64,000 nt of DNA from Paraphysomonas bandaiensis (taxonomy: Eukaryota; Protista; Chrysophyceae), in the NCBI GenBank assembly GCA_965644295.1, contig CBFFRP010000002.1:139824-203823 (forward strand), read 5' to 3'. A model generated the notes under the pieces. That model was not told the origin of the DNA. It saw nothing but the letters and a program-made list of their open reading frames with translations, and made no database searches. Within the stretch, counting starts at the first letter, position 1, and each line of letters opens with the position of its first letter. Below, in pieces: positions 54,383-64,000 of the stretch. The position numbers were made by a program, and so were the translations under genes.

Positions 54383-55343
54383 TCAAGAAGAAGAAGAACG
54401 GCAAGTCCGTGCATCCCATTGCCATGGAGGGTCCTGTGAACGCAGACACTGCAGATTATCGAAGTGTCCATGTTCTGCAGCAACACGGCAAGTGTTCTCA
54501 TCCCATGGACATGGAGGGTCCTGTGAACGAAGCCACCGCAAAACCTCAAAGTATCCATGTTCTGCAGCAACACGGCAAGTACGTGCATCCCATGGACATG
54601 GAGGGTCCTGTGAACGAAGCCACTGCAGAACATCCAAGTTTCCACGCCCTGCAGCAACACGGCAAGTATCTTCATCCCATGGACATGGAGGGTCCTGTGA
54701 ACGAAGCCACTGCAAAACATCCAAGTACCCACGCTCTGCAGCAACACAGCAAGTCCATTCATCCCATGGACAGGGAGGGTCCTGTGAACGAAGACAATGC
54801 AAAACTTCCAAGTCTCCACGCCATGCAGCAGTACGGCAACACCATTCATCCCATGGACAGGGAGGGTCCTGTGAACGAAGCCACTGCAGAACATCCAAGT
54901 GTCCACGCTGTGTAGCAACAAGGCAAGTCTTTGCATCCCATGGACAGGGAGGGTCCTGTGAACGAAGCCACTGCAAAACATCCAAGTACCCACCCTCTGC
55001 AGCAACACGGCAAGTACTTGCATCCCATGGACATGGAAGGTCCTGTGAACGAAGACAATGCAGAATATCAAAATGTCCGCGCTCTGCAGCAACACGGCAA
55101 GTCTTTGCATCCCATGGACAGGGAGGGTCCTGTGAACGAAGCCACTGCAAAACATCCAAGTTTCCACGCTCTGCAGCAACAAGGCAAGTCCTTGCATCCC
55201 ATGGACAGGGAGGGTCCTGTGAACGAAGCCACTGCAAAACTTCCAAGTGTCCACTAGAAGCAGAAACACGGCAAGCATCTTCATCCCATGGACATGGAGG
55301 GTCCTGTGAACGAAGCCACTGCAAAACATCCAAGTACCCACGC
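54383..55343 (-). pseudogene. Ankyrin-repeat gene copy 3: 3' portion only (~11 repeats), interrupted by the viral insertion
   Basis: Same 87-bp repeat; it breaks mid-unit at 55343 (..caagtacccacgc, where other units continue tctgcagc). No F-box or true start codon in the window. Confidence 0.85.
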
Positions 55344-56115
55344 ACACACACAGAACAACGACGATGAACGAAAAAATCAAGTTTTTCTTATCCTCTCTTC
55401 CATTAGCAAGCTAATATAACGCCCTCTGTAAACAGGGCTTAAAGCTATAAAATAACTTAAATATATAAAGTTAATATAATATTTAAAAAGTAATAAATTA
55501 AAAAACAAATTTAAAAAATATACTATAAAATATACTTAAAATTCAAAAAGTAATAAAGAACCTTAATATTTTATAGTATATTTTTGAGTATATTTTTAGA
55601 AATTTTTAATAATTTTTTTTATAAAAGACGTATGATAATAGAACAAATATACTAATTACTATACTCAAAAATAAACTTATTAGTAGACGAAGTAATAAAG
55701 TGGACTAGTCGTAGTTGCTGGAAAGATATAAGGTAAGGGTTAGTGATAGTCATCGTAGTAGTTGCAAGCAAAAAATAAATTTTCAAAATAATTTTCATTG
55801 TTTAACTCATGAATACTTTTCAAAATAATTTATCAAAAATATTTATTCTATTCAAAATATTTTTTCAAAATAATTTATTCTATTCAAAATAATTTTTACG
55901 TTATTACCAATTAAAAAATTATTAAAAAGCAAAATGGTTTAAAGAGATAATTTTAAAAAGGCCATGAAAGATGTCAAAAAGAAAAAACGGATGAAGGTTA
56001 ATAAATAGTTGAATACACACACGCAACAAACAATAAACAAAATAGTTTTAAAAAATATATAAAATATATAAAATATAAAAAAGGTTTAAAAAAATAATAT
56101 GTTTGTATATTATAT

Positions 56116-57762
56116 ATGAGTAACTTTGAATTGAAAAAATTAAAAGAGCTTTCTGCTGATTCTATAAATGACACTAAAAAGTATATTGCCGAATACTTTA
56201 TCCCTTTGAGTACAGGAGACCACGCCTTTAAAAAAAATGGTAAATATGAAATAAAGAAGCAAGAAGAAATGTCAAAAGTATACATTAATAGATTTCCTAA
56301 GCAGTTTAAGTCATGGTATTTATGCGAACATGACAATATATTGACACCTGTGTATAAAATAAATAAACCAACTTTATATGACGATAAACTTAATTTGTGT
56401 TCTCAACTACCAGCAGTCAAGCCTTATTCATCATTACCAAAACATGATAGAAAATATGCTGAAGTGTTCTTAGGTTATATGAAAGAGGTTATATGTTCAA
56501 ACAATGAAGCTATATATTCACATTTATTAAAATGGACTGCTAACATGTGTAAAGGAAACAAAAACAATTCATGTTTAGTGTTGAAAACAGAAGCCCAAGG
56601 AGTAGGAAAATCAACATATCCTCAGATGATAATTAATCATGTGTTACCAAAAGACTTGACTATTGAAACAGGAAGTCAATGTTTAAAGAGTAACTTCAAT
56701 TCTATTCTAGGTGGCAAATTGTTCGTATCTTTTGAAGAACTTGAAACATTCAGCACTGGTGAATGGATGGCGGTTGGATCAAAGTTAAAGAGACAGATTA
56801 CATCAAATATGATTACATTAGAAAGTAAAGGTTGTAATCCTTATGATGCTGAAAATATAAATAACTACTGCTTATTATCAAATCATGATATTAGCGATGA
56901 TGGAAGAAGATTTTTCTGTTTAGATATATCAACACACAAACAAGGAGATTTAAGCGAAGCAAACAAACTGTATTGGAAGAACATATATGATAATTGCTTT
57001 ACTGATAGTGTAGGTTATGCTTTGTATTGCTACTTCAGAGAAGTGGACACAACAGACTTTAATCCTCAAGACTTCCCAGAGACGAAATCAAAGATGGCAT
57101 CAATAGCTAAACGATTAAATAATGTTTGCAAGTTTATTAAGTATCAGTTTGTTTTGAATAAAGCTAGTATTGATCATACAGTAGATGAACTATTAGAAGA
57201 GTATACTTGTTATTGCATGTCTTTGAATATAAGGCCCTTGGGAAAAATTGGAATGAACGAGAAGTTAAAAGAGATAGGAATTAACTATGTGGTGAAGAAG
57301 ATAAACAGAAAATTATATAATAAGTATATAGTATCAAACAAAGAACTATTACAAATCGCCACAAAGAATAAATGGATTCATGAATTAGATGAATTTAGTG
57401 ATGGAACATCAATAGATAAGAACAAGAAGGAAGTTGAGACATCTGACCAAGACAACAACTCACTACTTAAAGAGATTGAATCTCAGAAGAAACAAATAGA
57501 AGAGCTACAGAAGAAACTAGAAGCATATGAAAAGAAAAAAGAAAAGAGAAAAGAAAGAAAGGAGAAGAAACTAAAAAATAAGGAAGTTAAAGAAACAGAA
57601 AGCGAAGTAGAGAGTCTATTTGTAGAAATTAAACCACCTAAGAAAAAAGGAAAGAACCGCTTAGAAGAGAATGAACAAAAGAATAACAAAGAGAAGCTTA
57701 AACAAATGAAAGCTGTAGAACTAGATGATGATGATATAGATGATTTAATGAAAATGATATAA
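56116..57762 (+). CDS. Superfamily 3 (D5-like/DUF5906-type) DNA helicase, 548 aa
   Basis: Walker A LVLKTEAQGVGKST, Walker B FVSFEE, LKRQIT...ESKG, motif C YCLLSN, arginine finger DGRRF; charged C-terminal tail. Confidence 0.88.
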   Translation: MSNFELKKLKELSADSINDTKKYIAEYFIPLSTGDHAFKKNGKYEIKKQEEMSKVYINRFPKQFKSWYLCEHDNILTPVYKINKPTLYDDKLNLCSQLPAVKPYSSLPKHDRKYAEVFLGYMKEVICSNNEAIYSHLLKWTANMCKGNKNNSCLVLKTEAQGVGKSTYPQMIINHVLPKDLTIETGSQCLKSNFNSILGGKLFVSFEELETFSTGEWMAVGSKLKRQITSNMITLESKGCNPYDAENINNYCLLSNHDISDDGRRFFCLDISTHKQGDLSEANKLYWKNIYDNCFTDSVGYALYCYFREVDTTDFNPQDFPETKSKMASIAKRLNNVCKFIKYQFVLNKASIDHTVDELLEEYTCYCMSLNIRPLGKIGMNEKLKEIGINYVVKKINRKLYNKYIVSNKELLQIATKNKWIHELDEFSDGTSIDKNKKEVETSDQDNNSLLKEIESQKKQIEELQKKLEAYEKKKEKRKERKEKKLKNKEVKETESEVESLFVEIKPPKKKGKNRLEENEQKNNKEKLKQMKAVELDDDDIDDLMKMI

Positions 57763-57823
57763 AATATATTGAATAATAAAAATGGTTAAAAAAATAAAAA
57801 TATATTATATATATATATAATAT

Positions 57824-58069
57824 ATGAGTATGAAATATAGAGTTGTTCAAATTGATGGAGACAATAATTTAATCAAAGAATATAAAACATTGAAAGAAGT
57901 TGCAAAAGACTTAGATATAATAGAGTTACACTTAGTAAGAAAGAATAACAAGATAACTGAAGGACGAATGGAAAGTAAGAGACCTCATCACATATACAGA
58001 GACTTTTTTAATAATACTAAAATATACAACATAAAGAAGGAAGTTAAAAAAATACAATCTAAAAATTAG
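57824..58069 (+). CDS. Small NUMOD1/HTH-like DNA-binding protein, 81 aa
   Basis: VVQIDGDNNLIKEYKTLKEVAKDL matches the NUMOD1 pattern V.q.D.dg.li..f.S..eAak.L; shared upstream motif. Confidence 0.65.
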   Translation: MSMKYRVVQIDGDNNLIKEYKTLKEVAKDLDIIELHLVRKNNKITEGRMESKRPHHIYRDFFNNTKIYNIKKEVKKIQSKN

Positions 58070-58132
58070 ATGACAAAATATACAAAATAAATAAAAAGGT
58101 TTAAAAATATATAATGTATATATATATATTAT

Positions 58133-63039: not shown

Positions 63040-63102
63040 ATTTTGTTGTCATTATAGTTAGTTAGTATTATATATACATATGTATATGTAACGTTTTAAA
63101 AA

Positions 63103-63426
63103 TTAATAGCCTTGTTCAGGTTTAATATAAGAACCGTGTGAATCATCATATTCTTTTAATAGCTTTTGTCTTTTCTCATAAGCTTTAGTTTTTTCAAGTT
63201 GTTCACTTGGTAAGTTTCTATTAATAGGATTCTTATAATATATTTGTTGTCTTTCACTGAGAAGTTCAACTTGTTTTTTTCGTTTCTGTATTTCTAAGTC
63301 TTTGATTAAGGCTTTATACTCTTCAATTTTTTTCGTAATGTTTGATATTTCAGTTTGAACTTGAGGTTTCTTTGTCTTTGGTATTGCGAAGAGTTCATTT
63401 TTTAAACATATAACAAAATCTGCCAT
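63103..63426 (-). CDS. Hypothetical coiled-coil viral protein, 107 aa
   Basis: Clean ORF with K/E/Q-rich heptads and a TATATA-rich leader. Confidence 0.6.
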   Translation of the reverse strand: MADFVICLKNELFAIPKTKKPQVQTEISNITKKIEEYKALIKDLEIQKRKKQVELLSERQQIYYKNPINRNLPSEQLEKTKAYEKRQKLLKEYDDSHGSYIKPEQGY

Positions 63427-63540
63427 AAAGTATATATAATAATGTTTATATAAAAAATATAGTTTTCAAATTTAATAAAAATAATAATTTTATTATAAAA
63501 CAATTTAAAAAACTAATTTTATATATATAATATATATATT

Positions 63541-63930
63541 ATGAAAACTTTAACAATTGACATTGAAGAAATTGACAGTTTATATTCAAAGCTACAAAAT
63601 GATAAAGAAATAAGATGTATTGTATTTGAATGTGAGAGAGTGAGAGAACTAAATTTAATTGAAATTGGTTTATCATATGAAGAAGAAGAGGAAAAAGATA
63701 TATTATATGAAAAAAACAATAGAAAAATCAATAAAGTTATTTCAAGATTTATTCCCAACACTATAACACATCTAAGTTTTAATGATGAAATCCACCTTGA
63801 TGAACGTGCATATAATTATTTACCTCAAAGTATACTTGAAATTCAGAATGAACATGGTGATACAATAACTAGAGATGAAATTAAAGAAATCATTAAAACT
63901 ACAGAAGAATCTTATGCAGGTTGTTTTTAA
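63541..63930 (+). CDS. Hypothetical viral protein with FNIP/LRR-like motif, 129 aa
   Basis: FIPNTITHLSF...LPQSILEI resembles FNIP repeats (IP.SVTHL.F); shared upstream motif. Confidence 0.55.
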   Translation: MKTLTIDIEEIDSLYSKLQNDKEIRCIVFECERVRELNLIEIGLSYEEEEEKDILYEKNNRKINKVISRFIPNTITHLSFNDEIHLDERAYNYLPQSILEIQNEHGDTITRDEIKEIIKTTEESYAGCF

Positions 63931-63935
63931 ATATA

Positions 63936-64000
63936 TTAATTTCCAATAACTTTATCAGGGTTTAAATGTTTCAAAGCGTCTGTACTATGTGATTTAAAAG
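63936..64000 (-). CDS. 3' end of a further viral ORF entering from outside the window
   Basis: One minus frame is open from the window edge: FKSHSTDALKHLNPDKVIGN-stop, converging on the 63930 stop. Confidence 0.35.
   Translation of the reverse strand, partial: FKSHSTDALKHLNPDKVIGN

Follow-up and report, generated by a model that had tools for sequence, protein, structure and literature searches.

The left end of a probable mavirus-related virophage-like provirus in an F-box/ankyrin repeat array of the chrysophyte Paraphysomonas bandaiensis

Introduction

[quoted passage not shown] Among the closest described systems are mavirus and the endogenous mavirus-like elements (EMALEs) of Cafeteria (Maveriviricetes), which integrate in a protist genome, have a GC content far below that of the host and carry, clustered at one end, a separate superfamily 3 (SF3) helicase, an rve integrase with a chromodomain and an exonuclease-less, protein-primed DNA polymerase of family B (pPolB) (PMC8547959, PMC10945749, PMC11161782). 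In this work, we analyzed a stretch of 64,000 nucleotides of Paraphysomonas bandaiensis DNA (contig CBFFRP010000002.1; hereafter the window), whose last 8.66 kb (55344-64000) share this gene set, the low GC content and the integrated state, and probably constitute the left end of a mavirus-related virophage-like provirus, that is, a 'pPolB-carrying mavirus-related element' (pMVRE), inserted in a host F-box/ankyrin repeat array.

In mavirus, the loss of the exonuclease goes alongside the presence of a separate SF3 helicase, and the N-terminal region of polymerases of this kind comprises a terminal protein and a vOTU protease (PMC11161782). In PMC13215967, the combination of DUF5906, pPolB, rve and chromodomain is given as the signature of the mavirus group, its polymerases are named palm-retaining truncated pPolBs, and pMVRE group 1, found in protist genomes and widespread in metagenomes, joins such a polymerase to DUF5906, RVE and a chromodomain.

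Other integrating or replicating elements are related to a lesser extent. Polintons/Mavericks (Polintoviricetes) are self-synthesising integrating elements with a pPolB and an rve integrase, for which terminal inverted repeats (TIRs) and a short target site duplication (TSD) are expected. Their polymerases have roughly double the length of mavirus PolB and retain the exonuclease together with N-terminal terminal-protein and protease domains (PMC11161782), and a separate SF3 helicase lies outside their hallmark set (PMC12220804). In cryptophytes and chrysophytes, endogenous PLVs form GC-discordant insertions of 14-40 kb (14-28% below the host), often many per genome and with fibre-like proteins, and the polymerases of Ochromonas danica cluster beside mavirus-type ones (PMC12220804; PMC10120064). 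Transpovirons, finally, are small AT-rich linear elements without structural genes, in which a truncated pPolB is fused to a superfamily 1 (SF1) helicase (PMC11161782).

An abrupt break in a host tandem repeat

The window contains several extended tandem arrays of an 87-bp unit coding for an ankyrin-type repeat of 29 aa, and one of them occupies positions 54398-55343 (10.9 copies by Tandem Repeats Finder). When the units are printed in register, the last one matches its neighbours through CCACGC (55338-55343) and breaks at position 76 of 87; after 55343, ACACACACAG stands in place of the TCTGCAGCAAC carried by all other units. The host/element junction (55338..55353) thus has the host repeat ending at 55343 and an insert that opens with four AC dinucleotides. 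A reading made beforehand from the sequence alone had described this junction as base-precise, and the host side is indeed fixed to about one base, the C at 55343 being assignable to either partner.

Base composition changes at the same point. The GC content is 0.264 in 55344-64000, compared with 0.503 in 45664-55343 and 0.450 in the whole host part (1-55343); within the insert, the first ~100 bases reach about 40% GC and the remainder 12-40% per 100-base segment. The same sequence-only reading had seen AT-rich DNA with uninterrupted open reading frames (ORFs) replacing the host repeat at 55343, in agreement with the measured values (26.4% versus 50% GC) and with the ten intact ORFs described below. 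Chance would not produce a GC drop from 50% to 26% exactly where a tandem repeat breaks off, with virus-type genes beyond it. No stretch of 55344-64000 recurs in the host part of the window in a repeat comparison, no inverted copy of the left end of the element is present within the 64 kb, and neither a tRNA nor an Rfam family was found in 55000-64000. The window ends inside the element, AT-rich virus-like DNA still continuing at base 64000.

The interrupted gene runs on the minus strand (54383..55343). What remains of it is the 3' (C-terminal) portion of an F-box/ankyrin-repeat gene (Ank_4, E 2e-26; 10.9 x 87 bp), with the ankyrin frame open from the junction down to a stop at 54383. The proposed insertion in an ankyrin-repeat gene is thus supported. 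Two paralogues in the window, at 39037-40635 (+) and 45688-52506 (-), have an F-box at their start (E 2e-5, above threshold) and then run on in the same 29-aa repeats. Given the orientation of the interrupted gene, its missing 5' part, including the F-box if there is one, is expected to the right of the element, in line with the prediction of the sequence-only reading. Together these genes make up a local family, whose F-box proteins carry ankyrin-like repeats of 29 aa (up to 74 units at 87% identity), and the element sits in the third member.

Replication and integration genes of the element

The element opens with a non-coding left terminal region of 772 nt (55344..56115), with 12-32% GC past the first ~100 nt, which holds inverted repeats (55491-55619) and short tandem repeats (55812-55899) and is a candidate terminal repeat whose partner does not lie within the window. 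It is followed by ten ORFs without internal stops, which cover 85% of 56116-63930. Five of the ten (helicase, ORF81, ORF112, ORF428 and integrase) have full-length homologues and show 0 stops and 0 frameshifts. The element had been called intact, and this description applies to the left 8.66 kb and to that part only.

The first gene (56116..57762, plus strand) encodes a D5-like SF3 helicase of 548 aa of the DUF5906 family (Pfam PF19263, E 3e-12, above threshold). The protein is full length relative to its homologues, which number in the hundreds in metagenomes, has a Lys/Glu-rich C-terminal tail and matches the helicase part of the solved phage primase-helicase 6k9c (E 3e-5). A scan of IMG/VR with the helicase gave no match.

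The polymerase gene, ORF428 (58543..59829, plus strand), encodes a protein of 428 aa. Neither alone nor as a profile of 27 sequences does it match any entry in Pfam, PHROGs, NCBIfam or the sequences of the PDB, and PF03175 in particular gave no match; a scan of IMG/VR with the polymerase alignment was likewise negative. In metagenomes, its homologues number 56 and span 250-560 aa. Modelled with AlphaFold on the alignment of these metagenome homologues, the protein reached a pLDDT of 90.9 and a pTM of 0.87, and when the model was compared with viral models using Foldseek, the mavirus DNA polymerase ranked first (E 9e-22, TM 0.70 over the query), ahead of a polymerase of 339 aa from the metagenome bin of a giant virus (Harvfovirus, E 8e-16) and of many protein-primed polymerases. 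Among solved structures, the phi29 polymerase was the only strong match (E 9e-12). The residues D150, K278...G286 and D373 are invariant and, judging from their spacing and from the fold, would occupy the positions expected for the metal-binding and nucleotide-binding motifs of family B.

Just 149 residues precede D150, the first catalytic Asp, and the short polymerase aligns to residues ~304-671 of a 677-aa relative (hhalign probability 100%), and therefore lacks about 300 N-terminal residues. On the basis of the modelled fold, ORF428 is thus a palm-only, protein-primed PolB devoid of both the exonuclease and the N-terminal terminal-protein region. It is a still shorter, stand-alone version of the palm-retaining truncated pPolB; the sections of PMC13215967 considered here hold no description of a stand-alone ~430-aa polymerase without N-terminal domains.

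The integrase gene lies on the opposite strand (59826..60845, minus) and encodes 339 aa, with an rve (DDE) catalytic domain and a C-terminal HP1-type chromodomain (Pfam PF00665 and PF00385, both above threshold). Among 11 relatives, the catalytic residues D66, D108 and E143 show a conservation of at least 90%. The chromodomain aligns with HP1 (1KNA, E 2e-8), and Y285, W306 and Y309 are identical to the aligned aromatic residues of HP1, which form its methyl-lysine cage. The three enzymes named in the sequence-only reading were thus all recovered: the rve integrase through Pfam rve and Chromo, the SF3 helicase through DUF5906 and 6k9c, and the protein-primed polymerase through its fold only.

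Two small genes separate helicase and polymerase: ORF81 (57824..58069, plus), 79-90% identical in the metagenome contigs L010 and L003, and ORF112 (58133..58471, plus), recognised by homology and situated immediately upstream of the polymerase. Neither has a family match in Pfam. Values of dN/dS against L003 and L010 are 0.08-0.14 for helicase, ORF81, ORF112 and PolB, and these four are therefore real genes under purifying selection. From their position and conservation, ORF112 or ORF81 is a candidate for a separate terminal (primer) protein. Among the relatives, the small ORF112 family accompanies the short form of the polymerase only.

A promoter-like motif before most genes

The segments of 50-90 nt that precede the genes of the element are alike, and they also resemble intergenic segments of the metagenome contigs L001, L003, L010, L002 and L004. 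The common motif is a GGTTTAAAA-type box placed ~30-45 nt before the ATG and followed by a TA-rich stretch that reaches the ATG. Expressed as one simple pattern, it has eight matches in the window element, seven of them 20-60 nt upstream from the start of a gene in the same orientation (0.2 expected), and L010, which was left out when the pattern was defined, likewise gave 7/8 matches 20-60 nt upstream of gene starts (0.3 expected). The motif stands before most genes of the element and is common to its closest relatives, being absent from the more distant ones.

On the plus strand, motif copies precede the helicase (56049..56115), ORF81 (57763..57823), ORF112 (58070..58132), the polymerase (58472..58542) and ORF55 (62823..62871). 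Additionally, the divergent intergenic region between integrase and ORF68 (60846..60944) holds one copy around a palindromic TTTAAA core, and the divergent region between ORF107 and ORF129 (63427..63540) holds another.

Relatives in metagenomes

The nearest relatives of the element are metagenome contigs with 78-90% protein identity, whereas looking up the exact proteins of the element and of the host part of the window gave no match. Two of the closest are L003, with 85% nucleotide identity over 56050-58548, and L010, a contig of 25.4 kb with 79% nucleotide identity over 57674-59828 and a PolB 78% identical to ORF428. The order helicase, one or two small ORFs, short PolB and opposite-strand integrase is found in L004, L009, L010, L011, L012, L015, L017 and L018, mostly at 24-27% GC, L009 reaching 34% with its flanking host DNA. 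The more distant L002 and L005 show the order helicase, integrase and long PolB (677 and 656 aa, respectively). Two versions of the polymerase, of 656-677 aa in these two contigs versus 404-445 aa in the short-PolB loci, are thus present in one virus group.

Morphogenesis genes are present in several of these relatives. A Pox_A32 ATPase is present in L002, L009 and L018, and a C5/C48-like protease in L010 and L002. The modelled structure of a 561-aa protein of L002 (pLDDT 77.5) resembles double-jelly-roll capsid proteins, and those of virophages head the ranking (E 2e-14 for Qinghai Lake virophage and a Sputnik-like virophage, E 1e-9 for mavirus), in a structure library that may contain few PLV capsid proteins. 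The homologue of this protein in L010 is split over two adjacent ORFs by one break, which may be an assembly error; the HNH gene of L010 is also interrupted once. The capsid candidates of the relatives gave no sequence-level family match. The family is therefore made of capsid-encoding viruses, and by extension from these relatives the window element would encode a capsid as well.

Two short contigs from other data sets are almost identical to parts of the element, L001 (Logan SRR31053356) at 99.66% and L042 (ENA ERZ17294013) at 99.86%; they may represent the same host, another copy or the free virus. The integrated relative L009, a eukaryotic metagenome contig of 123 kb, has diffuse GC borders, and a Ty1/copia-type retrotransposon (RVT_2, rve) lies beside the integrated element at 1-3527.

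Genes and spacer to the right of the integrase

Beyond the integrase, ORF68 (60945..61151, plus) encodes a small Cys-rich protein with homologues in L002 and L010. It is followed by the remnant of an HNH-AP2 homing endonuclease gene (61146..61192, plus), detected by homology, of which the last ~15 codons are recognisable. The remnant, which amounts to one large deletion, shares 85% nucleotide identity with the 3' end of the HNH gene with which L010 begins. The sequences compared suggest that homing endonucleases come and go in this virus group.

A structured non-coding spacer separates ORF68 from ORF335 (61395..61780). It consists of a run rich in CA (AAC-like), a hairpin between two copies of a perfect 29-nt palindrome (61457-61573) and then about seven spaced AAAACCC-N-AATTT-like units; the hairpin folds as single-stranded DNA at -35.6 kcal/mol (z = -9.5). 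No counterpart was found in the relatives, in IMG/VR (scanned with the 29-nt palindrome) or in the host part of the window. The spacer is a candidate for an origin, a regulatory region or a small nested insertion. Its CA-rich run (61395-61440) was also considered as a second element terminus, as tandem or nested elements would have; this was rejected, as it gives no significant alignment to the left end and is similar in composition only.

The Asn/Thr-rich ORF335 (61815..62822, plus) ends in a module of ~140 aa that also terminates proteins of up to 1755 aa, and its relative in L002 adjoins ATPase and capsid genes; going by these sequence features, it is a probable fibre or attachment protein. 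To its right lie ORF55 (62872..63039, plus), a small Cys-containing protein with the promoter-like motif upstream, ORF107 (63103..63426, minus), which is coiled-coil-like, and ORF129 (63541..63930, plus), with a weak similarity to FNIP repeats that falls below the Pfam threshold. In sequence-level searches (Pfam, PHROGs, NCBIfam, PDB), no family was assigned to ORF81, ORF112, ORF68, ORF335, ORF55, ORF107 or ORF129.

Classification of the element

The element combines a palm-retaining, exonuclease-less PolB, a separate SF3 helicase (DUF5906) and an rve integrase with a chromodomain. A truncated, palm-retaining polymerase of the mavirus type together with a separately encoded helicase places it among mavirus-related elements and not among canonical Polintons/Mavericks. 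The placement of the polymerase near mavirus is a ranking by structural similarity, and no sequence similarity of the element to mavirus proteins was detected in the profile searches run. Several features set the element apart from mavirus and EMALEs: the matched mavirus PolB entry has 617 aa versus 428 aa here, the N-terminal region of the long relatives is absent, two conserved small ORFs lie between helicase and polymerase, and the integrase comes after the polymerase on the other strand. The likeness to pMVRE group 1 is one of domain set, whereas membership of that group is set by polymerase phylogeny (PMC13215967).

The other groups fit less well. The rve integrase agrees with Polintons, but the polymerase, at 428 aa, is far from their long pPolB and is of the derived mavirus type. 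Most PLVs lack a pPolB and use other replicases, and membership of that group rests on the type of capsid protein, which here lies outside the window. Unlike in transpovirons, the polymerase stands alone, the helicase is separate and of the SF3 type, and an integrase is present. Accordingly, of the earlier label 'Polinton/virophage-like', the virophage-like half can be kept in its mavirus-related sense and the canonical Polinton half should be given up. The suggestion of an undescribed lineage was overstated, the architecture fitting published groups (PMC8547959, PMC12220804, PMC13215967), and the notion that the element could be reactivated goes beyond what sequence alone can support. Three features are modestly new: the polymerase of ~430 aa, which stands alone and has two conserved mini-genes upstream of it, the sharpness of the promoter-like motif, and the location of the insertion, in a tandem array that codes for protein.

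Several observations weigh against the assignment to a mavirus-related provirus. The right end, with the TIR and the 5-6-bp TSD expected of such elements, falls beyond base 64000, and the junction is that of the assembled contig. Neither the relatives nor IMG/VR (including a scan with the 26-mer of the left end) contain a counterpart of the left terminal sequence, and TIRs were not recovered from the relatives, all of which are partial contigs. Capsid, penton, ATPase and protease genes were not found in the 8.66 kb in view, and collinearity with L010 does not extend to ORF335, ORF55, ORF107 and ORF129. Viruses of this kind are known to exchange replication and structural modules (PMC12220804), which weakens a capsid assignment that rests on relatives. 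As regards the primer protein, profile-profile comparison (hhalign) gave no support for ORF81 and ORF112 as the split-off N-terminal region of the long polymerases (probability at most 2%), and neither protein matches a solved structure in the PDB.

Alternative explanations

The insertion could be truncated or rearranged, holding the left part of a virus only or having a right part broken by nested insertions and deletions. The short remnant of the HNH endonuclease gene, the odd palindromic CA-rich spacer (61395-61780) and the loss of collinearity with L010 to the right of the integrase would all fit such a history. We regard it as unlikely, as the five genes with full-length homologues are all unbroken, coding density is 85% and the promoter-like motif is kept before most genes.

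That the element is a capsid-less integrative replicon, plasmid- or transpoviron-like, in which a replication and integration module is accompanied by accessory genes, appears rather improbable. Homology searches identified no structural gene in the window, the spacer divides the conserved module from non-conserved genes, and complete mavirus-related elements without structural genes are on record (PMC13215967). The C-terminal module of ORF335, on the other hand, is typical of very long fibre-like proteins, and the neighbourhood of its relative in L002 includes ATPase and capsid genes; L010, the closest long relative, has capsid and protease homologues, and virus-like AT-rich DNA is still running where the window ends.

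An assembly chimera, in which a free or episomal viral genome of the same sample was joined to the host contig within a long tandem repeat, is very unlikely in our view. Long, near-identical tandem arrays assemble poorly, two other data sets contain near-identical pieces of the element on short contigs of their own (L001 and L042) and the junction itself was found nowhere else. Elsewhere in the window, arrays of 54-74 near-identical units are nonetheless resolved, suggesting that the reads were long and accurate; the break coincides with a candidate genome terminus, beyond which 772 nt are non-coding, instead of falling in the middle of a gene; an integrase is present; and GC-discordant insertions of this type are the rule in protists (PMC12220804).

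We give hardly any weight to the idea that the window reaches the edge of a much larger endogenous giant-virus region carrying a virophage-like module, since the 26% GC, the weak FNIP-repeat match and the same-fold 339-aa polymerase annotated in the Harvfovirus metagenome bin (E 8e-16) that would speak for it are opposed by the lack of any giant-virus hallmark gene in view and by a gene order and non-coding start that fit the left end of small elements (L004, L010, L018).

A possible mode of replication and integration

If the element is a mavirus-related provirus, the following scheme can be proposed. The short PolB would copy a linear genome from a protein primer, with the SF3 helicase unwinding the DNA in place of the lost exonuclease and strand-displacement functions, a compensation put forward for such polymerases (PMC11161782). 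The primer protein would be encoded separately, possibly by ORF112 or ORF81, and the four terminal AC dinucleotides would fit a slide-back start, with the proviso that one end alone proves nothing. The DDE integrase would insert the genome into host chromatin, and its chromodomain could steer it to repeat-rich chromatin marked by methyl-lysine, which a landing site in a cluster of tandem-repeat genes would fit. The shared motif may let an outside transcription apparatus switch on all genes together, most plausibly that of a co-infecting giant virus, by analogy with mavirus. The morphogenetic genes (capsid, penton, ATPase and protease) would lie beyond base 64000.

A bolder proposal, which we consider possible but doubtful, is that this lineage split the mavirus polymerase into a stand-alone, palm-only enzyme of ~430 aa and a separate terminal protein gene (ORF112 and/or ORF81, always directly upstream), and that its HP1-type chromodomain integrase prefers tandem-repeat gene arrays. 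If true, the split polymerase would restore the arrangement seen in phages and adenoviruses, and no smaller protein-primed replicase would be known from a eukaryotic virus. In either case, the short polymerase and the two conserved mini-genes upstream of it pose a concrete question on how protein priming is organised in this group.

Although the element leaves the general published picture of endogenous virophages and polinton-like viruses unchanged, it offers a clean, apparently undamaged example of a virophage-like provirus within a host coding repeat. One module for replication and integration is common to a whole set of AT-rich metagenome contigs; sequence profiles miss its polymerase, which is recognised by structure only. 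This matters for annotation, because pipelines based on Pfam polymerase models would call such elements 'helicase plus integrase only'. The shared promoter-like motif, in turn, provides a sequence handle that could link the element with a helper virus in the same samples.

Host surroundings in the window

Long microsatellites of the types (ATAC)n/(GTAT)n/(TGTA)n, of 100-255 units, lie at 6116-6529, 33055-33652 and 37930-38947. They account for the other low-GC dips of the window, which are therefore no further virus insertions. A single ORF of 7047 aa occupies 7101-28244 (+) and carries PT repeats and an REJ domain; it is made up largely of tandem arrays of 87, 168 and 204 bp at 92-97% identity, including 54 copies of an 87-bp unit. 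At 4659-6001 (-) lies a class I/II aminotransferase gene in several exons (Pfam E 1e-28 and 7e-22). A gene split in this manner points to a eukaryotic host with spliceosomal introns, and a eukaryotic host is also indicated by the microsatellites and by the 7047-aa PT-repeat/REJ protein.

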